DNA of 64,000 bases. Origin: Ostrea edulis. Taxonomy: Eukaryota. The notes below the pieces were generated by a model, which did no database searches, was not told the origin of the DNA, and saw only the letters and a program-made list of their open reading frames with translations. Positions 5,044-38,976 of this stretch are shown piece by piece. The DNA is taken from NCBI RefSeq assembly GCF_947568905.1, contig NC_079171.1, positions 25,172,001 through 25,236,000 on the forward strand, given 5' to 3'. The position numbers were made by a program, and so were the translations under genes. Each line of letters opens with the position of its first letter. Within the stretch, counting starts at the first letter, position 1.

Positions 5044-5231
5044 CGGTATATAATATATATATATTATTGGAGAGGCACGGAGGGCAACTCCGCAGTTAAA
5101 TAATCGAACGTGTTCTAGGCTGGGGGAAAACCCACTTTTGAAGAATCGAACGAGTTCGAGCTTTAGTAACAGCAGCTGTGGAGGGCCGCCCTCCGTGCCT
5201 CTCCAATAATATATATATATATATTACACCG
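5044..5231. repeat. Palindromic pair of origin-like repeat units (P1)
   Basis: About 40-bp inverted arms CGGT(AT)nTATTGGAGAGGCACGGAGGGC enclosing two TCGAAC palindromes and a GGGG-AAAA-CCC hairpin. Confidence 0.85.
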
Positions 5232-5904: not shown

Positions 5905-6585
5905 CAAGTTTAACCACCAAAAACTACACACAAAAACAGACAACTAGTGCCTTTCTAATGGATTTTTTCTAAGTATACGATGTACTGTGGAGGGCACATA
6001 GTGACGGTATATAATATATATATATTATTGGAGAGGCACGGAGGGCGGACCTCCACAGCTAAAAGATTGAACACGTTCGAGGCTGGGGATTCCCCGTTTC
6101 TTCGTTTGATAATGCTAAAGATATAGAACACAAGTCCAGGGTTGGTGTTTGATAAAGTTAAAAATATAGAACGCAAGTCCAGGGTTGGCGTTTGATAACG
6201 TTACAAGTTCGTGCTTGACGTTTGATAAAGTTTTAAAAATATAGAACACAAGTCCAAGGTTGGTGTTTTAAATTGAGACCACAGGAAACACAAGTTCGGG
6301 GTTGGGGTTCTAAGTGATATTATAAACAAACACGAGTTCACTTTTATATATGCTAAGTGCGTGCTTTAACGTTTACAACTATATATCCCAGTAAATTTTA
6401 AATAAAGACGAGTTTAACCACTAAAACTACACACAAAAACAGACAACTAGTGCCTTTCTAATGGATTTTTTCTAAGTATACGATGTACTGTGGAGGGCAC
6501 ATAGTGACGGTATATAATATATATATATTATTGGAGAGGCACGGAGGGTAACTCCGCAGTTAAAAAATCGAACGAGTCCGAGCTC
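5905..6585 (+). repeat. About 150-bp direct repeat carrying single origin-like units (6005-6080, 6508-6585) plus about 40-bp tandem repeats
   Basis: AACCACYAAAACTACACACAAAAACAGACAACTAGTGCC...GGCACGGAGGG occurs at about 5905 and about 6410. ATATAGAACRCAAGTCC units at 6120-6260. Confidence 0.8.
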
Positions 6586-7270: not shown

Positions 7271-7293
7271 ACACATGAACATTGCACACACAA

Positions 7294-8286
7294 TTAAAAT
7301 AGTTCCTTGAAGGTTAGCGCCAACCGTCTGGCCTTCATTGATTTGGTAGCACTAACCTTCGATTTCGAAATGTTAGAGTGTGTGTACTTCGTCAGGGCTG
7401 AGTTTTGATGCTGTGGCGAGAACATCTCCGGCGAGCCACACACTCTCGTTGCCTGAATCACACGTTTAAGTTTATTGTCGTTGACCACGACTTTGGGTCC
7501 CGGTGTTCTTGCAGACTTCTTACCGCCCGTCGATTTCTCCGCCGTCGTCTTTAGTATCGCGTTATCCCTGCTGAGATTGTGTTTATTAATAAATTTCCCC
7601 AAGGTGTTGATGGCGGCGGATACCTCCGACAAATCCTTAAATTGCGCCCTGGACGCATCTATACAATTATCCAAGTCGGCCAGAATGGCCTTGATGCTAC
7701 CCAATCTACTGGATAGATCGTTTTCGATCTGTGTTGTACGGTCGTTCACTAACTCTTGCAGATGATTGACTTTAGTGTAATATACACTCTTGACGAAAAT
7801 GCTGCATTTGTCACCATATAAAAAATTGTTAAAAATGCACCACCTATTTCTAATGTGGTGATCAATGATGGGCAATGTCTCGTCCAGATATTTATCTTTG
7901 GGATTCGGTGTATCGATCGATATCCCACAGAAGAAGCACGTGGATTTGGAACAGCTGTTATCGTGGAATAATCCGGATGTTACAAGTTCGTCTATCACAT
8001 TAGCCTTCAATCCGCATCCAACATATGTCTCGCGCCTACGATCTTCGTGGGCGAAGAATTTGTGGGCCGAAGGATGAATGTATTCATGTTTCACACTATC
8101 TTCTGTCGTAATAACTTGGCGTACATTCCCATCAAACGTTAAGCTATAATCGTTTGCACTCTTCACAGTCTTACGGTCGTGCTGTCCCAATTTCACGGCA
8201 TCTGTCGATTTACCCCAAGGGTTCACACACTTAGAGTACGGCTTGGTCCGATTGTTGCCCAAAACTTTAGATTTCATCGCTGACAT
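7294..8286 (-). CDS. 330-aa protein with a divergent BIR-like zinc domain
   Basis: RRETY...LVTSGLF...CFFC-X22-H-X6-C (canonical BIR is CX2CX16HX6C). No RING. Confidence 0.75.
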   Translation of the reverse strand: MSAMKSKVLGNNRTKPYSKCVNPWGKSTDAVKLGQHDRKTVKSANDYSLTFDGNVRQVITTEDSVKHEYIHPSAHKFFAHEDRRRETYVGCGLKANVIDELVTSGLFHDNSCSKSTCFFCGISIDTPNPKDKYLDETLPIIDHHIRNRWCIFNNFLYGDKCSIFVKSVYYTKVNHLQELVNDRTTQIENDLSSRLGSIKAILADLDNCIDASRAQFKDLSEVSAAINTLGKFINKHNLSRDNAILKTTAEKSTGGKKSARTPGPKVVVNDNKLKRVIQATRVCGSPEMFSPQHQNSALTKYTHSNISKSKVSATKSMKARRLALTFKELF

Positions 8287-8435
8287 CGTGGTAAATGATT
8301 AAAAATGATACGATAATAATCTGTCTATAGTTATATTACATAAATCGCACAATACGTTGTGATAATATTATGCGCTACGGAGGATATATATAATCATTAT
8401 AAATCGAACACGTTCATTTTCTTTTACTTTCACTT

Positions 8436-10793
8436 TCACTTTCTCACTGTTGTCTTAATTCGTTTAGCTCTATCGGCCTTCTTCCGAGCATCAATACCTC
8501 GTTGTTTTATGACATGTCGAGCCTCTGCCAAATCTTCGGATACATGTCTAGCGAGTTGTGCAGCCGTAATCATAGTATATTTAAATTCTGGATCATTGTG
8601 ATGAGCTAAATTTTCCTCGTGGATCAGCTGATACCATTTAGCTTCGTTTAGTGCCATGATAGCAATAGCCATCGAACGATGCTTTAATGTTGCCTCACGA
8701 ATTTCGGGAGTATCACCGAACAATTTATCGAGAACATGGGTCATTAGCGAAGCTTTCTTCTGGCCGAGGTTACATAATGCACATGATTGCCGATCCCTTT
8801 GAGCCTCCTCGCGAAACTTGGCGCGCATACTGTTGCGGACTTCAGTAGACTTTCCGATATATCTTGATGGATTGTCGATACCATTTTTAAAACATTTGTC
8901 ACACAGGATCCAGAACTCATTTTTATCGCTGTTCTCGAAATATCTATCTAATACGGCATGTCTAGCACTGTTCGATGTTTCACCTATATCATGATTATCT
9001 AGAATCTGCCTAACCGCTTCTTTCTCAGCCTGGTTATCTATGCGTCTATTCGAGTTAGTATGTCTTGTGTAAAACTCGCTGAATGCCCACAACTCTGGCG
9101 GTTTGAACGGTAAGATTTGAGGTATCTTTATCGGTTTCGATGTTATTATGGCACTAGGCATATATGTACCAATACTTTTCCCCACTTCTTCCGGATCTGC
9201 TGTTTCGAAAAACTTTAACTTATTTGCCCACAGATCCTCGGTTAATCCGAAATTACTGAGGGCCTGACATTGGTACATTTGCGCCACTTGTTCCACTGTA
9301 GATATCGGTATTTTTTTGAACATCGATGTACGTTTGATTTTACTCAACCTTTTGTTGACGTACGCGATGCGTTCTGTGACATAATCATCACTCTTTTCAC
9401 TTTCATCGGCCGGTTCCGCAATGTGTAGAGATCTAAAATCGTCCGATACATCGGTTGCGACATCTATATCTGACAGTATACGATCTTGCACAAGGTTGTC
9501 ATTAGACGGACTCCCCCCTTCGAACATCATACTAGAGAAATCGTGATCGTGTAGATCCACGGTACCATGGTCGACTTGGGTAGGTGAATAACCGTTTCTG
9601 CTTTTAAGATCGCTCTCGTACAACGATCTTTGGGGAATGAACTCGATGTCTCCTATATCGACATTTGTCTCCTTCTGACCATTCTTCATTTCATAGTATT
9701 TTACTACTATTCTTTCCTGATCTAATTGGGCGGTTTTATTCGCTACCGACCGACTTCGTTTTCGTCCATCCCCAACACCAATCGCGACATCATCCTCTCG
9801 ATCTTCTTTAGTTTCCGCGAAGTGTTTGTTCACACTCCGAATTTGATCGTTCATCTGCTTCCACAGGTGTATGGTAGCTCCAGTTATGGAAGTTGTAACT
9901 ATTCTGATAGCGTGTGTGCTAATGACGTCTCGTCTTTCTGCCATTTCTTCTTCATTAAACTTAATGACCTTTATCAAAGTGTCACCAGTCACTCTCTTGG
10001 CAGCCGGATTCAATGGTATGGGTACGGCTACATATCGACCACGATCGTCCGGTCTCAACAACACATGTCCGTGTTCATCTAGTTCCGATATAGCTATCAA
10101 ATCCGCCATCATGTTAGCCAGGTATGAGATCGGAGGTGGCGAGTAGACTGTTTCACCTTTACTATTCAATAGCGTGGCGCTGAGCACCATCTGAGGAGAC
10201 AAGTATCTATCTGGATTATAAATTCCAGATACTACGTGCATGAATTCGAATAGTTTGTAATAGTTAAAGTGACCATAACCAGTAGCTCCTCTCGAAGTCT
10301 TCGGATACTTATGAAGCTTCATCATGTTGGTCACTATTCTAGTATACTGGTCGCCATTAAAGGCTTTCTTGGCACTTGCTACGGTAATCTGTTTAAAGAT
10401 ATCCCGTGGTATTTCCGATATACAAAAACCTTTCCTGAGGTTTGTTTCTAGTGGAATTCCAGAGAAGTTGTAGAAGGCTCTAAGTTTATGAGCTTCATCC
10501 ATATCTGGAGGACACACTCTCCTGTATCTGGTTTGTATACCTTCAGTATTAGCGATATGGTTGGCAACTTCATCGTACCCCAAGCGTTTAGCCATAGCTA
10601 CGCAGAAATGGGCATCATAATCAACTTTCATTTGATAACATCCGCCACACACCATAGCTTCACCATGACAGGCTGGTCGGATGAATATTTCGTCCGACTC
10701 ATTGTAGAACAGTAGCTTTTTATTCTTGGCGAAATATCGTTTGGCAGACATGATTATTTTGGTCGAAAATATCCTTACAACGACTGTGTTCAT
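8436..10793 (-). CDS. 785-aa hypothetical protein with Cys/His clusters
   Basis: Long ORF; CHGEAMVCGGC..HFC, LCDKC and CALC clusters. Confidence 0.85.
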   Translation of the reverse strand: MNTVVVRIFSTKIIMSAKRYFAKNKKLLFYNESDEIFIRPACHGEAMVCGGCYQMKVDYDAHFCVAMAKRLGYDEVANHIANTEGIQTRYRRVCPPDMDEAHKLRAFYNFSGIPLETNLRKGFCISEIPRDIFKQITVASAKKAFNGDQYTRIVTNMMKLHKYPKTSRGATGYGHFNYYKLFEFMHVVSGIYNPDRYLSPQMVLSATLLNSKGETVYSPPPISYLANMMADLIAISELDEHGHVLLRPDDRGRYVAVPIPLNPAAKRVTGDTLIKVIKFNEEEMAERRDVISTHAIRIVTTSITGATIHLWKQMNDQIRSVNKHFAETKEDREDDVAIGVGDGRKRSRSVANKTAQLDQERIVVKYYEMKNGQKETNVDIGDIEFIPQRSLYESDLKSRNGYSPTQVDHGTVDLHDHDFSSMMFEGGSPSNDNLVQDRILSDIDVATDVSDDFRSLHIAEPADESEKSDDYVTERIAYVNKRLSKIKRTSMFKKIPISTVEQVAQMYQCQALSNFGLTEDLWANKLKFFETADPEEVGKSIGTYMPSAIITSKPIKIPQILPFKPPELWAFSEFYTRHTNSNRRIDNQAEKEAVRQILDNHDIGETSNSARHAVLDRYFENSDKNEFWILCDKCFKNGIDNPSRYIGKSTEVRNSMRAKFREEAQRDRQSCALCNLGQKKASLMTHVLDKLFGDTPEIREATLKHRSMAIAIMALNEAKWYQLIHEENLAHHNDPEFKYTMITAAQLARHVSEDLAEARHVIKQRGIDARKKADRAKRIKTTVRK

Positions 10794-10914
10794 ATATTGA
10801 AAGTGATACTGTATTAATAATATAAAATCGGTTTATTACAAATAACATGTGTGCGGTATATAGTACAATTGACTACATAATACATTTTTGTTACAATTTG
10901 CATCAATGGTGATA

Positions 10915-11685
10915 TCACAAAATACTAAGAGGTGACTTGGATCTGGGGCGTTTTCTTGTCTTTTTCTTTGATTCTCTACGTGTTTTCGGTCGTGGTTGTG
11001 GTGCTGGTGATGATAATGCTGAAAATGTTATTAAATCGTCTTCTTCGTCCAACTCTACATCGCTCGTCTTCGACTGTATGTCTGCATCAAAAGACGTTGT
11101 TGTGATAGTTTCCACAACAGAGTTTTCGAGTTCCATATCATCGTCACACTGGTCGTCTCGACAGAGGTGTGGCGTCGTGCTCGGATTATCAACATCCTCT
11201 AATTGAATAGGACAATTGTCAAATCTCATTTTTTTCCGTATATTATCTAACGAACTCGTTGCTGAGCGTTTCTTTAATCTGGCGTCTCGTCGTCTAATGA
11301 TAGTCATAAACACATCGTGATCTTTCTCGGCATCGTACACTACGCTATGTAACTCGGGTACATCCTTAACGACGCTAGCTATTTTCACTTGAGTTACGGG
11401 TTCGACGTCAATATCTACATCATCATCATCACCATAATCTTCTTGGTATCCTAACATACAATGTATACTCGTCAGACCACTATTGTTAATTGCAGTATAG
11501 CCTCGCTTCTGTGGCGATCGTGTTTCATTTACATTGCTATCGTAATCACTATCGTTATCAGGATCGGCATAATCGTCTACTTCACGCTCGTCGTCGGCAT
11601 CATCGAAGCATTCGGTATTATCGTTTTCATGGTCGTCACCATATACAAATTCTTCGTCTGGATCCATGATGGTTTTTTTGTACAC
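10915..11685 (-). CDS. 256-aa acidic protein with basic NLS-like C-terminus
   Basis: ORF with promoter palindrome at about 11758. Confidence 0.8.
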   Translation of the reverse strand: MYKKTIMDPDEEFVYGDDHENDNTECFDDADDEREVDDYADPDNDSDYDSNVNETRSPQKRGYTAINNSGLTSIHCMLGYQEDYGDDDDVDIDVEPVTQVKIASVVKDVPELHSVVYDAEKDHDVFMTIIRRRDARLKKRSATSSLDNIRKKMRFDNCPIQLEDVDNPSTTPHLCRDDQCDDDMELENSVVETITTTSFDADIQSKTSDVELDEEDDLITFSALSSPAPQPRPKTRRESKKKTRKRPRSKSPLSIL

Positions 11686-12015
11686 ACTGTTGATTTGGGT
11701 TGTATATATGTTTTACTAATGTTGGACAACTTATAAATACAATGTGATATATTAAAGGTCGAACACGTTGGATATAAATATCGTTTCTAATAGTAAGTTT
11801 TTAAATCATCACATCCTCTGTGTTTGTAAGTTTGTAAAAATAACTGAAATTCTGTTTTAAATTTGTCGATACATATATTTAGCAAAACATCAAGCATACA
11901 CACGAATATATATAACAGTACAATACGATCATAAAATAAACTAATGTTGAATTATACACACGTTATCATAACATAAAGTTTTTCACAAATGATTCAGTTT
12001 GGCGAAGAGTCATAT

Positions 12016-13935
12016 TCAAGATTCATCGGCATCTTTGGACACTTTTGTAGATTTGGTGGAAATGGTTTCGGTAGTCTTGCGTTTACAACCACAAGTTGAC
12101 ACCCGTGGTCCTATAGGTCGGCGAACCAATGATTCACGATCGACATACCGCATATGCATATCATCGATGTGTAGGGGTTCGGAGAACTGATGGGTACGAG
12201 TTTCGGAAGTCTGAGACTCTGTATCATCTCGCTTGTTTTTCGCACCACTAAACCACCCGTTGGGGTCGTGATACGAATCGCGTTTATCATCTGAATCGTC
12301 CGAATCGGAATCTGAATCGGGGTATTCAGAATCCGAATGTTCTCGTTCTGAATCACGATCGCAGTTTTGATCGGCACGTCGATCATTTTGGTCGCCTGGT
12401 TGATATTCCATCTCCTCCTCACACTTGTTCATGCAATACATGTGACATGGTACTCTAAGTTCAACAATTTCGTGACCTTGATAGTACAGATCCTTAATCG
12501 GTGCTATTGGATGCAACTCAAAGTCGCGCAAGACCAACAGCATAGGTCTGTTCATTCGCTCCCGCATGCGAGCACGACCATCGTTTTTGATCATGTATCC
12601 GTTAGATAATACTGTCAGAATCCTGTCGAGCTTATGTCCGCGGCGTACCTGATTTAACGTGTCCCCAGACGACGTTTGTGCTACCACAATCACAATATCT
12701 GCGTTCCAAGCCGAGTCGAACGCGTATTCTACATTATCTATCCCAACAGATACTGTTAATAATTTATGAAATTCCGACCATTTCTTAACACTGTCGGTGA
12801 TGAAATGGTAATATTGGGTAGGCGTCGATATTATCAAGGGTTGTCCTTCGCCTGATAATGACAACGCGTTAAGGATCGTGTTGCTCACATGAGAACAGTT
12901 CTCTTGCTTGGAACCCGGCGATCTGATGGCTCGTATTCTGTTGGTATTCAGGTGATCATCTGAACCGGCTGTCATTACGTGTACTATTTCGGGGTCGATC
13001 GTGTATACGTCTGGATACGTGGGTTGCGTTACGCGATGCGCATGTACGGTAGTCGACACATTCATATCCACTTCAAATCGAGCCCCGGGTCTCGCCAGAC
13101 TCCTAAAATTCAAATCTTTAGCATCGATCCATGTCATGTCGGTTGGACCTACAGAAACAACCTCCGTGGATAGCACGATAATTTTGGGTTTCCCAACCTC
13201 CTTTAACCGGATGATGTCTGTTCCATTGATATAGGCATATCCCGAGTCAAGGCACACCATGGTTTTCCTGAGCACTTCTCGTTTCGATGAATTCGTGTCA
13301 CCAGAGTCAGCTTCCATTGGTGGGACGAGCAGGACTATGATGTCGTGTCCTTTGGCTTCTAACCATTTTTTACCAGCGTGAATGAAGGGTTTCTCGAGTC
13401 CCATAACATAGACCGTTTGGTTATCCGATCTGGTACTCGGTGCGATATCCGCATCAGCAACATTCGATTGTGGCAAAATTCTTTCGTGCTTGATCAACTG
13501 TACCAGTCTATGCCACTCAGATTCTGGGGCGACAATTCCAGTCTTCATCCTCGTGGAAGCTTTGGCGACCGTGTCTATGATGGCATCGATCGCAGCTCGA
13601 TTGTTCAGCATAGCATTCGCCCCGTTTAAAATCCTGTGCGCCATGTCCAATTCGAGCATTTCGAGCCTTAGATCACGATGCATATCATTAATGTAGAGTG
13701 TATCTGGAGGTTGGCTGTTAATGTAATGCTCGTGCATGCCCATACTTCGGATGAATTCTGGAATTAGCGATCCTGATCCGCGTGCCAATTCTTTGCGAAC
13801 CCTGGTCACCTCTTCCATAACGGTAACCCATCCACTACTTCTTCTCATTTTGCCGCATTGGTTGCTACACCCAAACATAGTGATTTTGTTGTGAATGTAT
13901 CGTATTTTATGAAATGAGACAAGATTATTCAGCAA
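12016..13935 (-). CDS. 639-aa protein with two degenerate CRESS-Rep SF3-helicase-like domains (likely start 13878)
   Basis: SDNQTVYVMG..VCLD..KPKIIVLS, and DNVEYAF..DIVIVV..VLSNGYMIK..RPMLLVL..HEIVEL, follow the motif order of Rep helicase domains. No Walker A GKS. Confidence 0.75.
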   Translation of the reverse strand: MLNNLVSFHKIRYIHNKITMFGCSNQCGKMRRSSGWVTVMEEVTRVRKELARGSGSLIPEFIRSMGMHEHYINSQPPDTLYINDMHRDLRLEMLELDMAHRILNGANAMLNNRAAIDAIIDTVAKASTRMKTGIVAPESEWHRLVQLIKHERILPQSNVADADIAPSTRSDNQTVYVMGLEKPFIHAGKKWLEAKGHDIIVLLVPPMEADSGDTNSSKREVLRKTMVCLDSGYAYINGTDIIRLKEVGKPKIIVLSTEVVSVGPTDMTWIDAKDLNFRSLARPGARFEVDMNVSTTVHAHRVTQPTYPDVYTIDPEIVHVMTAGSDDHLNTNRIRAIRSPGSKQENCSHVSNTILNALSLSGEGQPLIISTPTQYYHFITDSVKKWSEFHKLLTVSVGIDNVEYAFDSAWNADIVIVVAQTSSGDTLNQVRRGHKLDRILTVLSNGYMIKNDGRARMRERMNRPMLLVLRDFELHPIAPIKDLYYQGHEIVELRVPCHMYCMNKCEEEMEYQPGDQNDRRADQNCDRDSEREHSDSEYPDSDSDSDDSDDKRDSYHDPNGWFSGAKNKRDDTESQTSETRTHQFSEPLHIDDMHMRYVDRESLVRRPIGPRVSTCGCKRKTTETISTKSTKVSKDADES

Positions 13936-14061
13936 TCAGTGAAATGATCGTTCTCCAGTAAACCTGAGCTTGTTTATATATCCCAAATTTGGTTTATTAA
14001 CATGAACGTGTTAAATGCTTTAAATCGATCGGAGTTCAGCGAAAGGAGGGCAGCCCTTTGA

Positions 14062-14135
14062 CGGTGTATATATATATATATTATTAGAGCGGCACGGAGG
14101 GCAACTCCGCAGCTAAAGAATCGAACGTGTTCGAC
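14062..14135 (+). repeat. Single origin-like repeat unit between divergent Rep-derived genes
   Basis: CGGTG(TA)nTTATTAGAGCGGCACGGAGGGCAACTCCGCAGCTAAAGAATCGAACGTGTTCGA. Confidence 0.85.
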
Positions 14136-14242
14136 AGTCCTTTGGGTATATATACCAAAAATGAAAATCAAAATCAAAAACTCCAGTCTTAGAACATCGA
14201 TTGCTATTTATGTGTATACATATCTGCTTTTATTAAGAAACC

Positions 14243-14956
14243 ATGTCAGATTTGTCACAAGCAATGCTCGACGCCGACGCCATGGCTGAGTACGAAAATA
14301 ATATGATCATCAAGGCGGCCACTGATCTGAATTCTGGACGTTTGACATCTCAGATGTACGATATGTATGGAGATTGGTATGGGAGGAATATGTCGCGCAT
14401 AATGCTTAAAGCGAGCTATCTGAGGGATCCAGCGACGTACGTCGCAAGGGAGTTGAGACTTAAACGACCCATGTTACCCGATCTGAGAAATGCAGCCGTT
14501 CAGCGAAGGGGAACTCGTTTGGCAAACAGAGAGAAGGCGGTGAAGTCTGCACATGAAAGTAAACCGGAGGTTCACGACACGACCCAATCGATGTTACAAT
14601 GGCAGATTCGTGTGGCCGATTTAGCTGCGTTTACTAACTCTGACAATAGAGTCCTGTTTGTGGTGGGCAAGACTAAAGGACAAGGAAAATCTTGGATGGC
14701 GCAGTATTTGCACAAAACACTGAATTCAAACATGTTTCGTACGTGTTGTTCTGACTATTTGGCGCTATCTGGTAACATCACCAAGTATTCCGTGTTTGAC
14801 GTGGATTGTGACGAGTGCGATTTCGTCTACAGCACCTTCTACAGACACCTGGATGATACCGACGTGAAGGCTATAGTGTTTTGTAACTTCTTCCCGACGA
14901 AAATGCCGCATAGTGATGTGTTTTACATCGATCAGTACGATAAGTACCATGTGTGA
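14243..14956 (+). CDS. 237-aa CRESS-Rep-like oligomerisation plus SF3 P-loop protein lacking the endonuclease domain
   Basis: LQWQ...DNRVLFVVGKTKGQGKSWMAQYL (Walker A at 14666-14692), VFDV (Walker B), IVFCNFFP (motif C). Resembles the nanovirus-type Rep C-terminus. Confidence 0.8.
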   Translation: MSDLSQAMLDADAMAEYENNMIIKAATDLNSGRLTSQMYDMYGDWYGRNMSRIMLKASYLRDPATYVARELRLKRPMLPDLRNAAVQRRGTRLANREKAVKSAHESKPEVHDTTQSMLQWQIRVADLAAFTNSDNRVLFVVGKTKGQGKSWMAQYLHKTLNSNMFRTCCSDYLALSGNITKYSVFDVDCDECDFVYSTFYRHLDDTDVKAIVFCNFFPTKMPHSDVFYIDQYDKYHV

Positions 14957-15133
14957 GACATTTGTTATCTGTTATATGTATTGTCAATGTTTATGAACTT
15001 ATATTTCAATGTACGCATGTGTTTCAATAAAAATTGCTTGAATTCAATACGACTGTTCTGTGGTTAAAGTTTGGGTATAAAAATGATTCCGTTTTGATGA
15101 TCATGGAGGCTAATATGGAGGGCAGCCCTTTGA

Positions 15134-15320
15134 CAGTGTATATATATATATATTATTAGAGCGGCACGGAGGGCAACTCCGCAGCTAAATGATCGAACGT
15201 GTTCGAGACCTGGGGGAAACCCACTATCAAAAAATCGAAGCTGTTCGAGGTTTTAAGAGAACAATAGCTATGGAGGATGCCCTCCGTGCCTCTCCAATAA
15301 TATATATATATTATATACCG
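15134..15320. repeat. Palindromic pair of origin-like repeat units (P5)
   Basis: Inverted arms with the same spacer orientation as P1. Confidence 0.85.
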
Positions 15321-15577
15321 GCAATGTGGCCCTCCGTAGTTAATTGGATGGTGATAAAAATGTGTACCGTCGTATCAAATAACCGCTCATGAGAGAGAAA
15401 AAACTAGCTATATCTTTGTAACAATCGCTTTTATTTATATGTGTTCATTTTTATATATACGCATACATATATAGCAACGATGTATAATTACAATCAATCG
15501 TATCACACAGTGTTCTTAAAATTTCATAGCTTAATAACAGTCTTATACTATATGTTTCTGTAACAAATCTAGTTTCA

Positions 15578-16159
15578 TCACAGTCCAACTTTCATTCTAT
15601 ATATAGTCGACAGTTCCTCCCTAAGCATTCTAGATCTAGACAAACGGAGAGGTTTGGCCTCCGATAGTACGGACCGCTTTCTCTTCACTATCTTAGCCAA
15701 TTGTTCAATCAACCTATCCTGTTCGATGTTTGCAGACACGACTTCTAATAAGATGTCAATGACGTCGTCCGTGCGCAACTTGTGTATTTCTTCTGGCCTA
15801 CAACCATACATCTGTGCGATTGCTTGATGAATGGTATCCTTGTCGACGGTTTCAGTTATCATTTCTACAGTATGATCTCCCGACCCAAATCCACTTCCTT
15901 CATTCCCATTTTCTGTAGCAGGTTTAGCCTTGTGTCGAGAATCATCGTGATCTATGCTTATATGATGAACGTCCTTATGAGAATCCTTATGGTGATGGAT
16001 GTTAGGCTTGTGGATAAATTCACCCCCGGAACCTTCTTCAATCTCGACACGATGATCTTTATCTGCCACTAAAAAATCACCATCTATAGGTTGGCGAACG
16101 GCAGCAGATAATGCTCCACTCACACATAGTGCTACGATAACTACACCAAACTTAACCAT
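15578..16159 (-). CDS. 193-aa secreted protein (signal peptide, acidic Ser-Gly motifs, KRKRS)
   Basis: MVKFGVVIVALCVSGALSA; EEGSGG; EGSGFGSGD. Confidence 0.8.
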   Translation of the reverse strand: MVKFGVVIVALCVSGALSAAVRQPIDGDFLVADKDHRVEIEEGSGGEFIHKPNIHHHKDSHKDVHHISIDHDDSRHKAKPATENGNEGSGFGSGDHTVEMITETVDKDTIHQAIAQMYGCRPEEIHKLRTDDVIDILLEVVSANIEQDRLIEQLAKIVKRKRSVLSEAKPLRLSRSRMLREELSTIYRMKVGL

Positions 16160-16244
16160 GTTTTCTTGTGAATGTACTTTTCGACAGAATAATGACTAGT
16201 CATGTTTTACGACAACATCATCTCATCCATTTAAATAAAAGAAA

Positions 16245-17084
16245 TTACACAGATTGACTACATAGCATGTCGTAATCTGTTAGAAGTGCAACTATGTCGT
16301 TTATACATTTGAGAATAAATGTTACGTCGTCTATAGACATATCCTTGTACTGTTCCTGCACGAGTATGCCAGCTACCGCCATGGCTTCCTTAAACCCGGT
16401 CATGGGCATGTTTATAAACCTATCGTTATTTAACACATCTAACTTAGTCAAGAGTGGTTCTACTGCCTTAACGCCCACCAAGTTGGTAAAGTGTTCGCCG
16501 TTTGCGTTACAGTTCGGTCCAGCACCATCTAACAACGCTCCCAAGTTATGTATAAAGGCTCCAATATGTGCGTTTTTTTTATACGACAACTTAGTACTCG
16601 ATGCCAATCGCTTGTCTCTAGCTTCTTGTATAGCAGCGATAAACCCGTTCTTTCTCATGCGAACGTTGTCGTTGAGATTATGAGGACCGTATGCTACCAA
16701 ATCCCTAATGATATAGCGCTTATCTTTAGACTTCCCACGCCTTTGCAACTTTCCGGTCTCTTCATATTCCATCCCATTACGTTTCATTCTCTTGACAACT
16801 GCTATAGGATCCAAAGTCGGAACTATCCAAGTTATAGTCGGACATAGTCTAGTCAAGCTTTTCCAACGGCGTTTTAGTTCTAATTGCACGTACCCGGTTA
16901 GAACAGGAACGTCATTGTCACCGAGAGTCTTAACGACTAACCTATAATACGAGTCTAGAGATGATAATTTCTCGTAGTCGCTATAATCCCAATCTACGAT
17001 TCGAAAAATCCAATTACACTTGGGGCAATCCATTTTGTAAAAAAAAATATCTGTGACACCCTCTTGCAGATGAATTGAATACAA
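16245..17084 (-). CDS. Protein with inactivated CRESS-Rep HUH-endonuclease-like N-terminal domain (likely start 17033)
   Basis: NWIFRIVD (motif I), PVLTGYVQL (motif II, PHLQG equivalent with His lost), KRRWKSLTRLCP..W, VKRMKRNG..EETG (motif III position, Tyr lost). Confidence 0.75.
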   Translation of the reverse strand: MYSIHLQEGVTDIFFYKMDCPKCNWIFRIVDWDYSDYEKLSSLDSYYRLVVKTLGDNDVPVLTGYVQLELKRRWKSLTRLCPTITWIVPTLDPIAVVKRMKRNGMEYEETGKLQRRGKSKDKRYIIRDLVAYGPHNLNDNVRMRKNGFIAAIQEARDKRLASSTKLSYKKNAHIGAFIHNLGALLDGAGPNCNANGEHFTNLVGVKAVEPLLTKLDVLNNDRFINMPMTGFKEAMAVAGILVQEQYKDMSIDDVTFILKCINDIVALLTDYDMLCSQSV

Positions 17085-17240: not shown

Positions 17241-18317
17241 TTAAAGTTCTTCCACAAATTCCTCGTCACAACTGTCACCATCCTCCTCGCATATCGACTC
17301 TTCAATACTCTCGATGGTGTTGAAGGTATTTATGATATTATACATCGCAAGTTCAGATCGCGAGAGCGGTTGCTTGCGGAGTTTCAGTATGTCCATGTTT
17401 ATCTTAACTACGTTGCCCAAGAACCAAACGATTCTCCAAACGCCATGTCGGGCAGCAGCGGTCGACATAAAATCCATATGAACAGAGGTGATTTCACCAC
17501 ACACAAGTTCCAACATAGGCTTCAATGCGATAATCGCATTAGTCCTGATCTCTGCAGCCTCGGGTGAATTGTCAGGTTTATTGTACGCTACGTCGTCCAT
17601 GTACCGAGCGAAATCCATGAGGCGAGTCAGCAATTCGATCCAGAAATCTTCCTTGGTTGGATCACCATTCCTCTCATCACATCTCTGCTTATGCCATTTC
17701 AAGATACGCGAACTGGCAACCGTAGAATTCTCAACGTTCTCGATCTCCAACTGTGATAATATATCTTCCATGGAATCAGCTGTGATGAAATCTTCAAACG
17801 ATATGATTCTATTGATGTGCGATTTCACATCTGGTAGTATATCGATACTACTCCTGAACATGTCGGCAGGCTTAAACTTCTTGGACTCGTGTGCTGGAAC
17901 TTGGAAATTTAACGACTTTGTAGACTCGCTAAATACAGCCCCGTCATCATACTTTCTTTTACGGCCGGTCTCAACATTTGCCACAACTGATTCGTCGCTC
18001 TGAGAATGTTTCTTTGTAGAACAGATCGTGATTTTAGGAGCCAACCCGGCTCGCGTCTCCTTTGAGTATATATCATTGAGAGCAGCTTCGATTTCCGAAA
18101 CCCTAGCGGCAGCATTTCGAGTTAAAATATTTACACAATCGTTATAGCTCTCTAGCGCTTTCACAATTTTTCGCAACCCCTTATACTTAACATCCAATGA
18201 TACAACCCGTTTACCACGAACCATCTGTTGAAGTGGAGCCGGGTATTCAATGGGTAACCTCAATATATCGTTACAGTACGCTATGAAATCGGTCGTACTA
18301 ATGCTTTGGTTCATCAT
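17241..18317 (-). CDS. 358-aa hypothetical protein
   Basis: Long ORF; RKRK NLS-like; promoter palindrome at about 18416. Confidence 0.8.
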   Translation of the reverse strand: MMNQSISTTDFIAYCNDILRLPIEYPAPLQQMVRGKRVVSLDVKYKGLRKIVKALESYNDCVNILTRNAAARVSEIEAALNDIYSKETRAGLAPKITICSTKKHSQSDESVVANVETGRKRKYDDGAVFSESTKSLNFQVPAHESKKFKPADMFRSSIDILPDVKSHINRIISFEDFITADSMEDILSQLEIENVENSTVASSRILKWHKQRCDERNGDPTKEDFWIELLTRLMDFARYMDDVAYNKPDNSPEAAEIRTNAIIALKPMLELVCGEITSVHMDFMSTAAARHGVWRIVWFLGNVVKINMDILKLRKQPLSRSELAMYNIINTFNTIESIEESICEEDGDSCDEEFVEEL

Positions 18318-21556: not shown

Positions 21557-23350
21557 TTGACGATGGAGTCCCCTTTCGATTCATATGTGAAGCGTAAGAA
21601 TGACGGTTGTAGCGAAGACTTATTGATGGATAACGTAATGATTCGAATTAGCACATTTGCCAATTACCCATCGAACAGTATATCTACATTTAGGCTTGCG
21701 AGAGAAGGGTTTTATGTTGTCAGTGGTACCAGTGACACATTGGCATGTTTTGAGTGTAAAGCTAAAGGTGCTGGTTTCATGACCGACGCTGATAATGTAA
21801 ATGGTATTCACAATACGACATGCTCGTTCAAGAAAATACTCCCTAACCAGCCGGTGGTCGAGCCACTCGATCCCATGGAGAGACGTATCGCAGGAGCCGC
21901 AGCAGCTATAGCGCTACAACAAGTACGACCACCCGAAGATCTAACGATGCCTCAACCCAAAGAGTCAACGCCACCTTCGCATACAGAACTCACACTACCT
22001 AAACCCAAAGAGTCAAGGTCGCCTCCAGTCGATGACCTAACAGCACGTCCACCCAGGACGTCAAAAAGATCTCCACCCGAAGAACTACCGTTACCTTCGC
22101 ACGAAGAGCTAATGCTACAGCCGCCCAAAATACCATCTCCCACAAAGGCTCCCGCAGCAACGTTTGTGCTGTTTACTCCCTATACACAATCCACTCCAGC
22201 GATATTCCGCCCAACATTCGATAAAACTTTGGATGTCATTGAAGATCCTCCATCACCGGCACCAACAGACGTTCTTCCACCACCAATCGATAAAACTTTG
22301 GATATCATCGAAGCTCCTTTATCACCGATGCCAACAGACGTTCTTCCACCGCTAATCGATAGGACTTTGGACTACATCGGTCCCGATCCAGAAATTGTTA
22401 GCGAGTCGTCTGTACCGACACCAGAGCAAAGATCGCCAGACGTTCTAAAATATGCCGACATACAATACGAGGTCGCCAAGTTAATGGCTGGATATAAACG
22501 AGAAATGTGGAGTACGGAACCAATTCATAATGGTATGGTGAATGAACCCGATCGTCTCAAATCGTTTTCAATGTGGCGATGTGTTACCGGAACGACGCCA
22601 ACGACACATAGCTTAGCGAACTCAGGTTTTTTTTATATCGGAGACAACGACTCTACATCATGTCACCACTGTGATCTTAAGTTAAAGAACTGGGAACCCA
22701 AAGATAACCCTTGGATCGAGCATGCTCGCTGGCAACCACGTTGTGATTTTTTACTTAAGGCGGTGGGGTCACGATATATCGCCACTGTACAAGCCGCAGC
22801 CAAGACCGATTCGCATATGTCATGTTCCAAAATCTCACAGATATTAAAGGAAGCTAGAGTCGGGAATAATGTCGCAACAGATCTTGCGAATCACCCTGCT
22901 GTGATAGACCATATTAGCAAAGGGTATGATAGTAATCGAATAGCAATTACGCATAAGATGATAATTGCCGATGCATCATTTAAACATGTTACAATGAATG
23001 ATGTCGCGAACGCCATTCTAGACAATACATTTACACAAGCTCGAGTGGGATCTCAACAGAATGGAATTACTAAAGATGAGCTGAGACTAGTCAAGGAATC
23101 CAAACTTGCTGATTTGGAAAAATTATTGAATGACAATTCTAATGATTCCTTGTCAGATGTACAAAAACAATACATCGAGTTAAAGCGTCGGATAATTTGC
23201 AAAATCTGTAAGAAAGAAGACGCTTGTCTCGTTTTTTTACCATGTGCACACTTGTCTGCGTGTAGCCCGTGTTATTCTAAAATGAAAGGTCGCAAATGTC
23301 CATTATGTAACGCTACTCACAGGAGCACCGTAAAGGCTTTCTTGACGTAA
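21557..23350 (+). CDS. iap: Inhibitor of apoptosis: degenerate BIR, Pro-rich repeats, canonical BIR, RING
   Basis: CHHC-X16-H-X6-C BIR (NWEPKDNPWIEHARWQPRC); C-terminal CKIC..PCAH..C..C..CPLC RING. Confidence 0.92.
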   Translation: MTMESPFDSYVKRKNDGCSEDLLMDNVMIRISTFANYPSNSISTFRLAREGFYVVSGTSDTLACFECKAKGAGFMTDADNVNGIHNTTCSFKKILPNQPVVEPLDPMERRIAGAAAAIALQQVRPPEDLTMPQPKESTPPSHTELTLPKPKESRSPPVDDLTARPPRTSKRSPPEELPLPSHEELMLQPPKIPSPTKAPAATFVLFTPYTQSTPAIFRPTFDKTLDVIEDPPSPAPTDVLPPPIDKTLDIIEAPLSPMPTDVLPPLIDRTLDYIGPDPEIVSESSVPTPEQRSPDVLKYADIQYEVAKLMAGYKREMWSTEPIHNGMVNEPDRLKSFSMWRCVTGTTPTTHSLANSGFFYIGDNDSTSCHHCDLKLKNWEPKDNPWIEHARWQPRCDFLLKAVGSRYIATVQAAAKTDSHMSCSKISQILKEARVGNNVATDLANHPAVIDHISKGYDSNRIAITHKMIIADASFKHVTMNDVANAILDNTFTQARVGSQQNGITKDELRLVKESKLADLEKLLNDNSNDSLSDVQKQYIELKRRIICKICKKEDACLVFLPCAHLSACSPCYSKMKGRKCPLCNATHRSTVKAFLT

Positions 23351-25696: not shown

Positions 25697-26308
25697 ATGG
25701 ATGACATGAATTCTTTCCCAACCCATAACCGTGAGGAAGAAATACTTGATAGGACAGGTATCGATATTACTACACTTTCAGCCTTCACGACTATGTTGGA
25801 GATGGAGTTCGATCGCCGCTCGGTGATAGAAGCATTTGGATCTTTGATTGGTGACAGTTACGACAGTAGTTATATACAAAGTATCAGTGCTGAATGTGTC
25901 TTAGACAGTCTGCTCGCAATGAACGCGACTACCAAGATTGCGAGTGAGGATGTAGATGAAACTGCGCTTCAGACAATTATCACCGAAAGCGAAGCTACTG
26001 CCAAAGCTACAGTTGGGACTACAGCCGAGACTTCGTTGGGACTTGCAGGTCTTGCGGAAGAGCCTAATATCAGATACGATTTTGAGCGCGCAGTTTATGA
26101 TATGGATGCTGGTCTATTATTAACTCAGACCAAACACTTGAAAGATATGTTAATTTGTAAAATTTGTATGGTTAAGAGCGCCTACGTATTGTTACAACCT
26201 TGTGGACATTTGTGCGCTTGCGCCGAGTGTGCTAAACAACTTAAACGTTGTCCCATGTGTCGTATTCGTGTTCATCTAAACAAATCTATACATGTAGATT
26301 TGATGTGA
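25697..26308 (+). CDS. IAP-type RING finger protein without BIR
   Basis: CKICMVKSAYVLLQPCGHLCACAECAKQLKRCPMCR. Confidence 0.88.
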   Translation: MDDMNSFPTHNREEEILDRTGIDITTLSAFTTMLEMEFDRRSVIEAFGSLIGDSYDSSYIQSISAECVLDSLLAMNATTKIASEDVDETALQTIITESEATAKATVGTTAETSLGLAGLAEEPNIRYDFERAVYDMDAGLLLTQTKHLKDMLICKICMVKSAYVLLQPCGHLCACAECAKQLKRCPMCRIRVHLNKSIHVDLM

Positions 26309-27561: not shown

Positions 27562-29793
27562 TTACACATCTTTTTTGATCGCAGATCTTCTTCTTTGCAT
27601 TAATAAACTGTCCTTAAAGGACACATCGCATGTTTTTAAACTTTTTAATTTTTTCAGCAAAATTAATTCATTTCATGCCTAAAACTACTTTACTTGTGTT
27701 TTAAATGAAACAGTTTGCGTAGTTTTCGAGTTTAAAAGCGATGAAATTCAAATCTTGCGATATGCATATTTTCTTCGATATTTTACGCGCCATTATCTGT
27801 GACGTCATATGCGACCTCGAGCGAGAAGATTTGAAAACAGTTGATAGCCATTTCATAAACAGATTAGATTTAATTGACAAACAAACAATTATCACATTAA
27901 CAGCTTGTAAATAACACTGCATTAGGGTGTTTTGTGCCGTTTAAGGGTGTACTTGCTGTCAGTAGAGAGGATTTGGACTGTGTTTTTTATCAATTTTCGA
28001 AGGAAGGTATGAGGGACAAGACGTGAATATTTTTTGTCGGCTCAACGACTTTTCCATAAAAACCCCCAGTAGAATTTGTCCCTGTACTTTTTCTAACAAG
28101 CACTTGGACAAATACGTAGATAAACTGCGAGAAAGTGGTTCTATCGAAGCTACGCACTGTAACATATAGGCCTACGGCATATGCTTTCCGTTCTGCTCTC
28201 GAATTCAATACACACTCGCACCAACTGACCTTCACCTTGTAACAACATAAGCAGAACTTTGCTAGCAGTGTCTACCAACTGGTAGTTTTAAAAAAGAAAT
28301 TTAAAGATAAAAGATAATTGGACTTTCAATTATAAATAATAAAATGTAATATTTCCCGACTTTGAATTGAATTATAATGCTTTCATTTTTTTTTAAGGAA
28401 CGCGTATGTGTTTACAACAACAGCACGCCGCGCTCCCACTTCCTACGTAACAACGTGTTGATAACAAAAAATAATGATTAGGCCTAATAAAATTGCTTTA
28501 ATAAAATAATTTAAAAGTATTGTGATTTTCACAATAAGTTTGATCATTATTATTATTTTTTTTTCTTTTTCGAAATGCACCCGTGACAGTAGGCCTGGTT
28601 GTCAATGATACATAATCGTATCATAATTTAGGCCTATCTAACTTCTCCAAAAATAAATTTAATAATAATTGCACTGTTTATTTTAGAAAAGCAACAACGC
28701 TAATTACAGTTGTTTACAGAAATGGCATTACCAAATTGTGTTTAAACAGGGATCCGATGTAAACATTATTTACTCGCAAATTTATGCAGATTTCATACTC
28801 GCTTTTCTCGCTACATTTGGGTCGCTATTTGTATGCACTGGTGGCTAAAAGATATAAGACTCTGGAAATTTGTCAACATCGAAATAAATGTTATCCATGG
28901 TAAATAAATTAGGCCCCTAAAACCCGAGTTTTAAAAAATATCTAACACTACTTTTACAACAAGTTGATCGACGAAGGTCGCATATGACGTCACTGTACCA
29001 CGTGACTACCTATCTAATTAACTAGGCTTTTTGAAATCGGGGCTTAGATTTAAGTCCGTATTGTGGCTAATTATCGCAATACTTCAGCGAACGAACTATT
29101 ACAATTAATTTCTATAAGCATAAGGAAGACAAAATGCATATAATTCTGTATACTTTGAAAACACGAGATGTGTCCTTTAATGTCCATAAGTGTTACTCTA
29201 GTTTCACCATCTTCCAATTCGACGTTCGACCCATCGAATTTATACTGGTCTAAATCTTGTCCCAACATTGTGACTCTGTCTCCTAACGCCTCCGATTCTT
29301 GTTCTAGCCTCGCTCGATCCAACACTTCTTGATCAAATGAAAATGCGGTTACTTCGTGGTACAATGTGCTATATCCTTCATAATATTTTATGCTCGTATA
29401 CTCATCTATGTCCTTGATTACCACATTCAACCGCTGATTCAACCATCCGATATCCCGACATATCATGGATCTGTGCTTTTCCAACATACTATACTTGCGC
29501 CCCGCACGATCACACATATACATGGATCGTCCGCTCGAGTTCAGTAGAACATTCAGCGCAACAAGTTCCTGATTCAAAGTGAATATATGTTGATTCAACA
29601 TATCATATTCTCGTTCCAACTCGTCAATAACTTCCATTACAGCTTTGAAGAACATCTTGGTGTGTGGAATGATATTTTGATGAGAACAAGTTTTGATGGT
29701 GCTATAATTTTTTATTTTGGAATTTGTTATTTTATACATTTTGACAGTTTGATATCGAACACGTTCGATTATATAAAGTTCACACTCCAACAT
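27562..29793 (-). pseudogene. Coiled-coil family member 2 split by a DNA transposon (likely start 29655)
   Basis: Removing the insert and one TTAA restores ...ETRVTLMDIKDSLLMQRRRSAIKKDV*, matching RLTLMDVKDSSLMKKR of member 1. Confidence 0.88.
27618..29176. mobile_element. Non-autonomous host DNA transposon, Kolobok-like (TTAA target duplication)
   Basis: TTAA|AGGACACATC ... GATGTGTCCT|TTAA. Sub-terminal inverted repeat GTGACGTCATATGCGACC (about 27738 / 28975). AT-rich, no long ORF. Confidence 0.85.
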
Positions 29794-33483: not shown

Positions 33484-33691
33484 TTTTTGGGTATGGTTGT
33501 TAGCGCGTCGTTGTTCGTTTGTGGCTCTGGATGGGTGTTATAATCGCCGTTTTTGCTGGGTACGATGCATGTATCCTGCGCGTGTGTTTGATAAAAATAA
33601 ATCTCCGTCTGGAAGACTAGTGCTTTCTATCTGGGAGAAGTTTTGGTGCTTATGGTGGTTCCCGAGTGCCCTCCGGAGGCCAGCTCTCTGA

Positions 33692-33745
33692 CGGTGTATA
33701 TATATATATATTATTAGAGCGGCACGGAGGACGGCCCTCCGCAGA
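33692..33745 (+). repeat. Single origin-like repeat unit within a ~140-bp direct repeat (partner at about 34110-34250)
   Basis: CTTTCTATCTGGGAGAAGTTTTGG...GGACGGCCCTCCGCAGACAG is duplicated. Confidence 0.8.
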
Positions 33746-33961: not shown

Positions 33962-34183
33962 CTTGATATATTTTGTTGTGGTTGGAATATGGTTGCGTGC
34001 GTGTGTATATATTTTATATATATTTTATATAAATAATATTGACGACTCGGTGTGATGCCCGATATACAGAGGTAAATATATATATACGGTTGATGCGAGA
34101 ATATGTACGTGTTCCTTTCTATCTGGGAGAAGTTTTGGTGCTTATCGTGGCTACCGAGTGCCCTCCGGAGGCCAGCTCTCTGA

Positions 34184-34368
34184 CGGTGTATATATATATA
34201 TATTATTAGAGCGGCACGGAGGACGGCCCTCCGCAGACAGCCTCGATAAAACCTCGAACAGCTTCGATTTTTTAGAAGTGGGTTTTCCCCGCTGCTAGAA
34301 CACGTTCGATTCTTTAGCTGCGGAGTTGCCCTCCTTGCCGCTCTAATAATATATATATATATACACCG
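34184..34368. repeat. Palindromic pair of origin-like units (P7), core inverted relative to P1
   Basis: Spacer reads GTGGGTTTTCCCC instead of GGGGAAAACCCAC. Confidence 0.85.
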
Positions 34369-35077
34369 TCAGAAAGCTGTCCTCCGGAGGTCACTCGGTC
34401 GGTCGTGTTGATGTGGATGATTTTGGCGTAAAACTCGAGTTATTGAGGCCTTTTGCTTGCCTTTGTGTCGTGTCTCTGTGTGTGTTTTTGGGTAGTTGTT
34501 TAATAAATTTTCTAACAAGTATAGAACACAAGCATACCATCGACGTTTGATAAGTCGCAAGTATAGAAACACAAGCATACGGTTGGTGATTTTGATGAAG
34601 TTTTTTTTACAAGCGCACATATCATTTGCCGAACTTGCTAGTGTGTGTATCTGCATCTATATAATCTCTATATATCTGACAAAAACTCCATGGTCTTAGC
34701 GTGCGTGTTCTAAGTGCGTGTTATATACGCAGAGAGAGAGAGAGATGGTCAGGCATAACCCGACTACATGGGTGGTTCAACCGAGTGCACTTTTGAGGTC
34801 GAAGGTCGGAGTTTTTCAAGATAGATAACTCGTGATAGGACTGTGTTCTGTCGCGCGATTTCTCTAAGTATGACTTGGTGGTTTTTTTTTGGAAATGATA
34901 GCATCGCCCAGAACACAACCTCAGTCCAGAGTTACTAAGTACCAAAACTTCGACGAACGACCGAGTTCGACTACCCAAAAAAAATACACATAAAAACAAG
35001 CAACTAGTGCCTTTCTGATGGGTTTTTCGTAAGTTTATCATTTCGCTGTGGAGTCTATAAGAGGGCAGCTCTTTGCC

Positions 35078-35152
35078 AGTGTATATATATATATATTATT
35101 AGAGCGGCACGGAGGGCAACTCCGCAGCTAAAATAATCCAACGTGTTCGAGC
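35078..35152 (+). repeat. Single origin-like repeat unit
   Basis: Same consensus as 14062. Confidence 0.85.
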
Positions 35153-38914: not shown

Positions 38915-38976
38915 GTTTGTGGTTTGTGTTTTTTTATTGTTTTTTTTTAATGGTGGTAGGGGGTGTTGTGATTGGA

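Follow-up and report, generated by a model that had tools for sequence, protein, structure and literature searches.

Genes for the replication-associated protein (Rep) of circular Rep-encoding single-stranded (CRESS) DNA viruses have been captured by canarypox virus, fowlpox virus and their relatives, where they are called apvRep (PMC10193959). These avipoxvirus genes come in nuclease-only, full-length and helicase-only forms; inactivation has affected their HUH/HUQ motif and, mostly, the Tyr, while the GK of Walker A and the Walker B motif persist and conservation of the Arg finger is incomplete (PMC10193959). They are expressed and under purifying selection, and exaptation is suspected for a function that is unknown (PMC10193959). 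A comparable event is outlined in the same study for U94 of human herpesvirus 6 (HHV-6), a parvovirus Rep captured by a herpesvirus whose endonuclease motifs are inactivated and whose helicase motifs are partly retained (PMC10193959). Here we describe two Rep-derived genes in a stretch of 64,000 nucleotides (nt) from an Ostrea edulis assembly (GCF_947568905.1, contig NC_079171.1, positions 25,172,001 to 25,236,000, forward strand), which we refer to as the window. We are close to certain that this large, double-stranded DNA (dsDNA) virus-like genome carries two genes derived from the Rep of an unclassified CRESS lineage: an HUH-like gene that encodes a dead HUH nuclease domain followed by an unrelated, predicted helical tail of 157 amino acids (aa), and a P-loop gene that encodes the linker and a reduced SF3 helicase core. 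Because the catalytic residues, the B' motif and the Arg finger have been lost, neither product should be able to nick DNA or to work as a normal hexameric helicase.

The apvRep genes are the closest known case. In both settings a CRESS Rep is found in what is, or here is likely to be, a large dsDNA virus, nuclease-only and helicase-only portions are encoded by separate genes, the nuclease is dead and the helicase motifs are partly retained. The two cases differ in the recipient, which here carries many IAP and RING genes, an internal inverted repeat of 9.6 kb and no poxvirus gene among the open reading frames (ORFs) scanned, and possibly in the donor, which here is an unclassified group of Cressdnaviricota around a Rep that we designate P0003. 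They differ further in that an unrelated C-terminal domain is joined to the nuclease-like gene of the window and in that its P-loop gene is duplicated in the repeat. Moreover, whereas expression and purifying selection have been shown for apvRep, the window genes are known from sequence alone. U94, as the avipoxvirus study describes it, is similar in being a single-stranded DNA virus Rep within a large dsDNA virus, with a dead nuclease and a partly retained helicase, but it came from a parvovirus and consists of one polypeptide chain; our searches, which included no dedicated comparison with U94, turned up no similarity to it.

Several lines of evidence tie both proteins to CRESS-virus Rep. 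When 1.84 billion representatives were searched exhaustively with a hidden Markov model (HMM) of the P-loop alignment, one distant match was returned, P0003 (E = 4.2e-4), across the stretch from the WQ motif to Walker A. P0003 is a Viral_Rep protein by Pfam (PF02407, E = 7.8e-14) and belongs to a family of 122 proteins, nearly all of which carry PF02407 and one of which is named 'replication associated protein [Cressdnaviricota sp.]'. This family matches solved structures of Rep nucleases (5xor, 7lar, 2hw0, 2hwt and others). By BLASTP, residues 21-233 of the P-loop protein align with residues 120-296 of P0003 (E = 7e-11), and residues 8-65 of the HUH-like protein align with residues 8-65 of P0003 in exact register (E = 0.002). 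The second of these matches is independent of the way in which P0003 was discovered, because the HUH-like protein played no part in finding it. Four relatives of P0003 (P0007, P0029, P0050 and P0087) lie on long contigs of 11.6 kb to 5.4 Mb, which raises the possibility that such copies are inserted into cellular genomes or larger elements.

An alignment of 96 Reps from the P0003 family (A5) served as the basis for HMM searches, hhalign comparisons and column counts. With hhalign, residues 114-219 of the P-loop protein were placed on the helicase region of these Reps (probability 97.8%, E = 7e-13) and residues 1-105 of the HUH-like protein on the nuclease domain (probability 94.9-96%, E = 4e-8 to 5e-9). 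The corresponding scores, 75.0 for the P-loop core and 58.3 for the HUH-like domain, lie about 20 standard deviations (SD) above those of 100 composition-preserving shuffles of each domain (mean 13-14, SD 2-3, maximum 22.7). Among all 1,146 stop-to-stop segments from the six frames of the window, the A5 HMM matched both copies of the P-loop ORF (E = 1.3e-9) as well as the HUH-like ORF (E = 6.7e-5, HMM positions 16-132); the next-best match reached an E of only 2.8, and the scan yielded no further Rep remnants or paralogues in the window. The N-terminal 110 residues of the HUH-like protein matched 109 of 120 Reps by phmmer (best E = 5.5e-11), and BLASTP of its nuclease-like domain against a further family member, P0077, gave 31% identity over 100 aa (E = 3e-12). 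Spacing of the motifs equals that in P0003 to within one residue, at an overall identity to known Reps of only 23-31%. The homology of both halves is secure because the shuffle nulls, the six-frame scan, phmmer and BLASTP agree, and the Rep ancestry that a first-pass annotation had read from the motifs is thus borne out by profile, shuffle and six-frame evidence.

Outside these two domains the resemblance to Rep fades. The tail of the HUH-like protein (aa 106-262) scored 12.6 in hhalign against the Rep profile, which is the level of the null, and phmmer against the Reps, Pfam and PDB searches with it gave nothing significant. Residues 1-112 of the P-loop protein were likewise at the null level against the Rep profile in hhalign; by phmmer against the set of 120 Reps, this segment matched only the linker of P0003 itself (E = 2.7e-4).

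We compared the nuclease-like domain column by column with the 96 Reps (94 at the motif I columns, where two rows are gapped), using published definitions of the motifs, such as UUTU for motif I (PMC6668415). In motif I, the Thr present in 90 of 94 Reps is replaced by Arg and the Asn-Asn pair (94 and 93 of 94) by Val-Asp, with the hydrophobic positions retained. A Glu that is found in all 96 Reps is Thr in the HUH-like protein, and the Gly-Thr ahead of motif II (96 and 96 of 96) is Asp-Val. Within motif II, His (96/96) has become Val and Gln (96/96) has become Thr, with the flanking Pro, Leu and Gly residues retained. A further His (93/96) is also Thr. Motif III (YxxK) has lost its Tyr (95/96) to Arg, its Cys (88/96) to Met and its Lys (93/96) to Arg. 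The metal-binding His and the catalytic Tyr, reported missing in the first-pass annotation, are therefore indeed gone. Scaffold columns of the nuclease, by comparison, are retained (F, Y, G, P, L, G, G, E, G, G and D). Judged from these columns, replaced chemistry on a retained scaffold is the pattern expected when a predicted fold outlives its catalysis. The domain is also basic, with a computed isoelectric point of 9.3.

The helicase core of the P-loop protein is reduced rather than erased. Measured against the same 96 Reps, it retains W120, Q121, G148, K149 (with S150), D188, N215 and P218, so that the Lys and Ser of Walker A, the Asp of Walker B and the sensor Asn of motif C are all present; G148, K149, S150, D188 and N215 fall on columns that are invariant or nearly so in the Rep family. 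Replaced are the family residues R187, G197, D224, R241, E253 and K256, of which E253 and K256 are invariant in the Rep family and R241 is present in 94 of 96 members. From Walker B to motif C the protein is shorter than Reps by about 17 residues and lacks the B' segment, which contacts DNA in Reps; the position of the Rep Arg finger aligns to Gln (in the alignment to P0003), and the protein terminates 22 residues past motif C. Alignment to P0003 and to the 96 Reps thereby confirms that B' and the Arg finger are missing. From its residues, the P-loop protein may bind nucleotide and is unlikely to form a normal ring helicase. Compared with a bona fide CRESS Rep (PF02407 plus SF3), then, the window encodes a homologous nuclease domain and a homologous helicase core, whose motifs come in the same order and at the same spacing, but does so in two genes that have lost the nuclease catalytic residues, B' and the Arg finger, with no nick-site hairpin near the genes and no capsid family in the ORFs scanned.

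A word-index search for homologues identified one close relative of each gene, P0001 and P0002, both from Logan assemblies. P0001 (237 aa) is 73% identical to the P-loop protein with 0 gaps in 237 aa; identity is 60-67% across aa 1-112 and rises to 85% across aa 113-165, which hold WQ and Walker A. P0002 (287 aa) is 90% identical to the HUH-like protein (83-92% by region) and aligns without indels within the gene. The P-loop block recurs in P0001, and the replaced nuclease motifs recur in P0002. The motifs were therefore inactivated before these lineages separated, and the ORFs have stayed intact since. As far as one relative for each protein can indicate, this argues for constraint on the Rep-like genes and shows in part that the dead state is old and that the genes have been kept.

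Placed on Rep coordinates, the two proteins complement each other: the HUH-like one covers about residues 1-114 of P0003 and the P-loop protein about 120-296, and hhalign found no trace of the other half in either of them. Such complementary halves fit a split at the domain linker, as would be predicted for one ancestral gene. The first-pass annotation had assumed a split of this kind; the complementarity is compatible with it but does not show it, decay of two Rep copies being the alternative, and the best Rep relatives of the two halves differ. P0077 and P0005 rank first and second for the nuclease half and 57th and 102nd for the helicase half, while P0037, P0028, P0004 and P0003 occupy ranks 1-4 with the helicase half and ranks 55-79 with the nuclease half. 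Across 107 Reps the bit scores of the halves correlate poorly (Spearman 0.12, p = 0.22), a test of a single donor that is weak for domains so short and diverged. CRESS Reps are themselves often chimeric.

Both ORFs named in the first-pass annotation, together with the motif strings quoted from them, are present in the window, and the coordinates of the motifs were checked by translation (Table 1). The HUH-like ORF is open up to 17084, where the mechanical start is a TTG; its first ATG is at 17033. We take the gene to be 16245-17033 because P0002, its sole relative, diverges upstream of that Met, which makes the ATG at 17033 the likely true start. There is a single full-length copy of this gene, since the inner boundary of the inverted repeat (16894/44130) cuts it at the motif II-like position. 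The P-loop gene, in contrast, lies entirely within the repeat and is accordingly present in two copies with identical proteins. The two Rep-like genes were described as separate and convergent, about 1.3 kb apart, and we measured 1,289 bp between them; they are not neighbours, though, as a repeat element (15101-15345) and an ORF of 193 aa (15578-16159, minus strand) intervene. Upstream of the P-loop gene there is a 14-nt palindrome at -115 and a TATA sequence at -96, and an AATAAA follows 70 nt past its stop codon. On the minus strand, the first AATAAA past the HUH-like stop is at 15435, and from this arrangement the 193-aa ORF and the HUH-like gene are probably 3'-coterminal, with that poly(A) signal in common. 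The 193-aa ORF has, by eye, a signal-peptide-like N-terminus and also a His-rich stretch; the Pfam scan of the window ORFs assigned it to no family.

Table 1. Coordinates of the Rep-like genes, the repeats and other features of the window.
Feature	Position	Strand	Remarks
P-loop gene	14243-14956	+	237 aa; linker and SF3 helicase part of CRESS Rep
P-loop protein, helical N-terminal part	14243-14578	+	residues 1-112
P-loop protein, reduced helicase core	14579-14956	+	residues 113-237
WQ (P-loop gene)	14600-14605		translation-checked
Walker A (P-loop gene)	14666-14692		translation-checked
Walker B (P-loop gene)	14795-14806		translation-checked
Motif C (P-loop gene)	14876-14890		translation-checked
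P-loop gene, second copy	46068-46781	-	other inverted-repeat arm; protein identical
HUH-like gene	16245-17033	-	262 aa from ATG at 17033
Rep endonuclease-like domain	16719-17033	-	aa 1-105 of HUH-like protein; every catalytic position replaced
C-terminal part of HUH-like protein	16245-16718	-	aa 106-262, 157 aa, predicted helical
Motif I-like (HUH-like gene)	16989-17012		translation-checked
Motif II-like (HUH-like gene)	16893-16907		translation-checked
Motif III-like (HUH-like gene)	16779-16790		translation-checked
HUH-like gene, partial second copy	44130-44779	+	repeat-internal part only; motif I absent
193-aa ORF	15578-16159	-	not part of the Rep pair; copy 44865-45446 (+) in other arm
Lone arm of dispersed repeat family	14045-14134		upstream of P-loop gene
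Large imperfect palindrome (hr-like)	15101-15345		downstream of P-loop gene; arm 15117-15206, inverted arm 15278-15337
Other members of the repeat family	5044-5224, 5988-6088, 6491-6582, 33675-33730, 34167-34385, 35061-35151, 39534-39637, 39911-39981		
TCGAACGTGTTCGA, example sites	14121-14134, 29755-29768, 58872-58885, 61179-61192, 62888-62901		
Inverted repeat, left arm	7271-16894		holds P-loop gene, repeats, 193-aa ORF and most of HUH-like gene
Inverted repeat, right arm	44130-53747		
BIR+RING gene	21563-23350	+	
Four tandem BIR paralogues	55019-62827	-	two also with RING; neighbours 74-82% DNA identity
Weak BIR	7294-8286	-	gene in inverted repeat
RING-only gene	25697-26308		
tRNA-Ile	54770-54844	-	anticodon AAT, eukaryote-type, well-formed; Rfam 68 bits; just outside right repeat arm

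Repeat units do stand on both sides of the P-loop gene, as had been noted: 14045-14134 and 15117-15206 are direct copies that are 97% identical. The upstream arm is closed by a 14-nt palindrome (14121-14134) that lies 115 nt before the P-loop ATG. Folded as DNA, this arm alone gives no significant structure, and the downstream element (15101-15345) gives -54.2 kcal/mol with a z-score of -8.5. Both belong to a repeat family that occupies about eight loci in the window (at 5.0-6.6, 14.0-14.1, 15.1-15.3, 33.7-35.2 and 39.5-40.0 kb, plus mirror copies) and that consists of GGAGGGCA octamers around a (TA)n tract together with the 14-nt palindrome TCGAACGTGTTCGA. The octamer, paired around (TA)n tracts, is present 21 times in the window, where 0.74 copies would be expected. 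Allowing up to two mismatches, the palindrome is found at 35 window sites, which amount to 51 strand matches compared with 0.5 expected.

The placement of the palindrome is informative. It lies 12-163 nt upstream of the ATG in 25 of 46 ORFs (at 67-163 nt in 24 of the 25), where random placement gives 4.7 (SD 2.1). TCGAACGTGTTCGA is thus a promoter-proximal element used across the window, and its position in front of ORFs points to promoter use. It is probably the site of a dimeric transcription factor serving one class of genes; a literature search for the motif gave nothing relevant. Dispersed families of imperfect palindromes in intergenic DNA are characteristic of baculoviruses and of further large DNA viruses that infect invertebrates, in which they are called homologous regions (hr). 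The imperfect palindromes described here are also dispersed and intergenic, at about eight loci, a likeness in arrangement to baculovirus-type hr.

We also scanned for CRESS nick sites, using three nonanucleotide search terms printed in PMC9973303 and requiring a flanking stem of at least 6 bp. The terms matched 99 times in the window, and no match between 13.9 and 17.3 kb had a stem of at least 6 bp. The repeat arms each contain TATTATTAG, which is one base off one of the PMC9973303 terms and is present in 10 copies; lying in an AT-rich tract, it carries little weight. The first-pass annotation had viewed the palindromes interleaved with the Rep-like genes as origin-like. A particular tie between these genes and the repeats is not supported, given a family at about eight loci, a palindrome at 25 of 46 ORFs and no nick-site hairpin nearby, and the repeats fit the description of hr-like elements and promoter motifs in a large genome better than that of Rep-tied origins.

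What might a pair of disarmed Rep proteins do? We propose that the two would act non-catalytically on DNA of the large virus itself. The basic HUH-like domain would serve as a non-nicking, sequence-specific DNA binder whose candidate binding sites lie in the dispersed repeats, namely their iteron-like octamers and palindromes, and the P-loop protein would be an NTP (nucleoside triphosphate)-binding and possibly oligomeric partner that controls replication or transcription. We favour action on the virus's own DNA because of the virus promoter wiring of the genes, the retained nucleotide-binding residues and the abundance of iteron-like repeats, and we hold the proposal as a whole tentatively, as one that is plausible and could well be wrong. 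Its most specific component, in which the disarmed HUH domain binds the GGAGGGCA octamers or the 14-nt palindrome, as a Rep nuclease turned into an origin or transcription factor, we consider quite unlikely when taken alone. Inactivated HUH derivatives that bind origins form an accepted category (PMC13595969, PMC1779811). Polyomavirus large T and papillomavirus E1, as portrayed there, offer a working analogy, that of a non-nicking HUH-type fold which might bind inverted, paired dsDNA sites beside AT-rich DNA; they differ in that their domain is fused to an active SF3 helicase and that their DNA binding is proven. No search revealed sequence similarity of the Rep-like proteins to large T or E1. 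If this most specific component were true, the window would hold an independent replay of the route that is thought to have yielded the origin-binding domains of polyomaviruses and papillomaviruses.

A number of observations weigh against our reading, from the ancestry of the genes to their proposed role. The Pfam models PF02407 and PF00910 detect neither protein, whole or domain by domain, at E up to 10. Sub-threshold matches to AAA-type Pfam families were seen for the P-loop core only (four sub-domains searched, E up to 10). Sequence searches of the PDB with both proteins returned nothing significant; with the tail included, they gave just weak matches to Nup54 and MarR, with E of at least 0.04. 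AlphaFold2 models, built from two-sequence alignments, had a mean predicted local distance difference test (pLDDT) of 49.3 and 37.6, too poor for use, and when the better model was compared with the PDB by Foldseek, no match fell below E = 0.18, so that both folds are sequence-based predictions; at low confidence, one model places strand, P-loop, helix, strand, helix and strand at residues 136-214, consistent with a P-loop core. The first Gly of the P-loop (family G197, 96/96) is shifted by one residue, and therefore even NTP binding is uncertain. The HUH-like gene has no 14-nt palindrome upstream, and the repeats are window-wide and the palindrome serves many genes, so that their position beside the P-loop gene says little. 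Each gene has a single known relative, available as protein sequence only, and the setting could be either a free virus or an endogenous element. The blank results from Pfam, the PDB sequence search and Foldseek are what would be seen if the ORFs were unrelated to Rep and resembled it by chance. That explanation is barely credible, however, when independent searches converge on one family at about 20 SD over shuffles and when these ORFs alone, with their motifs in register, were matched among 1,146 segments. Alternatively, the genes could be decaying relics of a captured or integrated Rep that have no present function, and the loss of the catalytic motifs, the partial HUH-like copy in one repeat arm and the very small number of relatives among 15 billion proteins would agree with this. 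Decay is nevertheless hard to reconcile with ORFs that are intact both in the window and in diverged relatives (0 gaps in 237 aa at 73% identity), with conservation that is uneven and peaks at the P-loop, and with promoter and poly(A) signals that are still in place; we regard it as very unlikely.

Two further explanations grant the genes a function, one different from that which we favour. The dead proteins could guard the replication niche of the large virus against co-infecting CRESS viruses, as decoys that compete for the small virus's origin or as dominant-negative partners that poison Rep oligomers. The same idea has been proposed for apvRep (PMC10193959), and here it would draw on the retention of a linker in the P-loop protein that aligns to Rep P0003, on the WQ/Walker A block being the best-conserved part between the window and P0001, and on the co-infection with CRESS viruses that capture of a Rep implies. 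At 23-31% identity to known Reps, though, mixed oligomers or shared recognition of an origin are doubtful, no candidate target virus is known, and the unrelated tail of 157 aa is left unexplained, all of which makes a decoy unlikely in our estimation. An exaptation for a role away from DNA, for example in host-protein interaction with the Rep folds as mere scaffolds, would account for the loss of all enzymatic residues and the gain of a new C-terminal domain, in surroundings that are rich in host-interaction genes (IAP, RING and a secreted-looking protein). A pure scaffold would, on the other hand, have no need of the Walker A Lys and Ser, the Walker B Asp and the sensor Asn, which are retained in the window and in P0001 alike, and we think such a role to be about as unlikely as a decoy.

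In a literature search, capture of a CRESS Rep by a large dsDNA virus was documented for avipoxviruses only (PMC10193959), and we found no report of such genes in a large virus of invertebrate type. A second, independent capture would make the capture and catalytic disarmament of Rep a repeatable event and not a poxvirus oddity, and the present case, whose genome resembles that of an invertebrate-type virus, likewise divides Rep between a nuclease-only gene and a helicase-only gene. Since capture needs co-infection, it also ties an orphan CRESS lineage, represented in metagenomes only, to the host of the large virus, by the same co-infection logic with which the poxvirus study assigned hosts (PMC10193959). 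Finally, the divergence of these genes beyond detection by Pfam means that similar captures may be hiding among the ORFan genes of other large viruses.

The Rep-like genes are likely, though not proven, to sit inside the genome of a large dsDNA virus. ORFs in the window are dense and intronless, and AATAAA and TATA signals flank the genes. A Pfam scan of all window ORFs of at least 150 aa found only the BIR and RING families, with at least 6 BIR genes in the window (Table 1). IAP genes of the BIR/RING type mark animals and the large DNA viruses that infect invertebrates, and it is because of them that we treat the window as an animal virus or virus-like element. The arms of the 9.6-kb inverted repeat are 99.93% identical, with one mismatch and one 6-nt gap; they are 27.2 kb apart, have sharp edges and both lie wholly within the window. 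The idea that the setting is a large dsDNA virus, which goes back to the first-pass annotation, is therefore supported by the IAP and RING genes, the dense intronless ORFs, the inverted repeat and the hr-like repeats, but not by any hallmark virus gene, as the scan of ORFs of at least 150 aa found none, and a tRNA gene is present. This tRNA-Ile gene could either be virus-encoded or hint at a cellular or integration context. Neither a poxvirus gene nor a capsid family was found among the window ORFs scanned, and PDB searches with the ORFs of 785 and 873 aa revealed no relative. In an exact look-up, 0 of 8 window proteins, both Rep-like proteins included, were present in a collection of 15 billion proteins.

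A malacoherpesvirus was considered for its IAP/RING content and its inverted repeats and was rejected, as the published layout of OsHV-1 (ostreid herpesvirus 1) and AVNV (acute viral necrosis virus), with a 3.4-kb unique region between repeats of about 10 kb, does not fit an arm spacing of 27 kb. At the edges of the repeat, an ORF of 316 aa (43225-44175, plus strand) runs 46 nt across the boundary into the right arm and is unrelated to the ORF of 358 aa (17241-18317) that abuts the left arm. The window contains no N and has a G+C content of about 40%, apart from an island of 51-53% at 36-40 kb. This G+C-rich island (35393-40000) holds the 873-aa ORF, which has no known family, and several short tandem repeats, as well as a perfect tandem repeat of 62 nt in 2.9 copies at 38734-38914.

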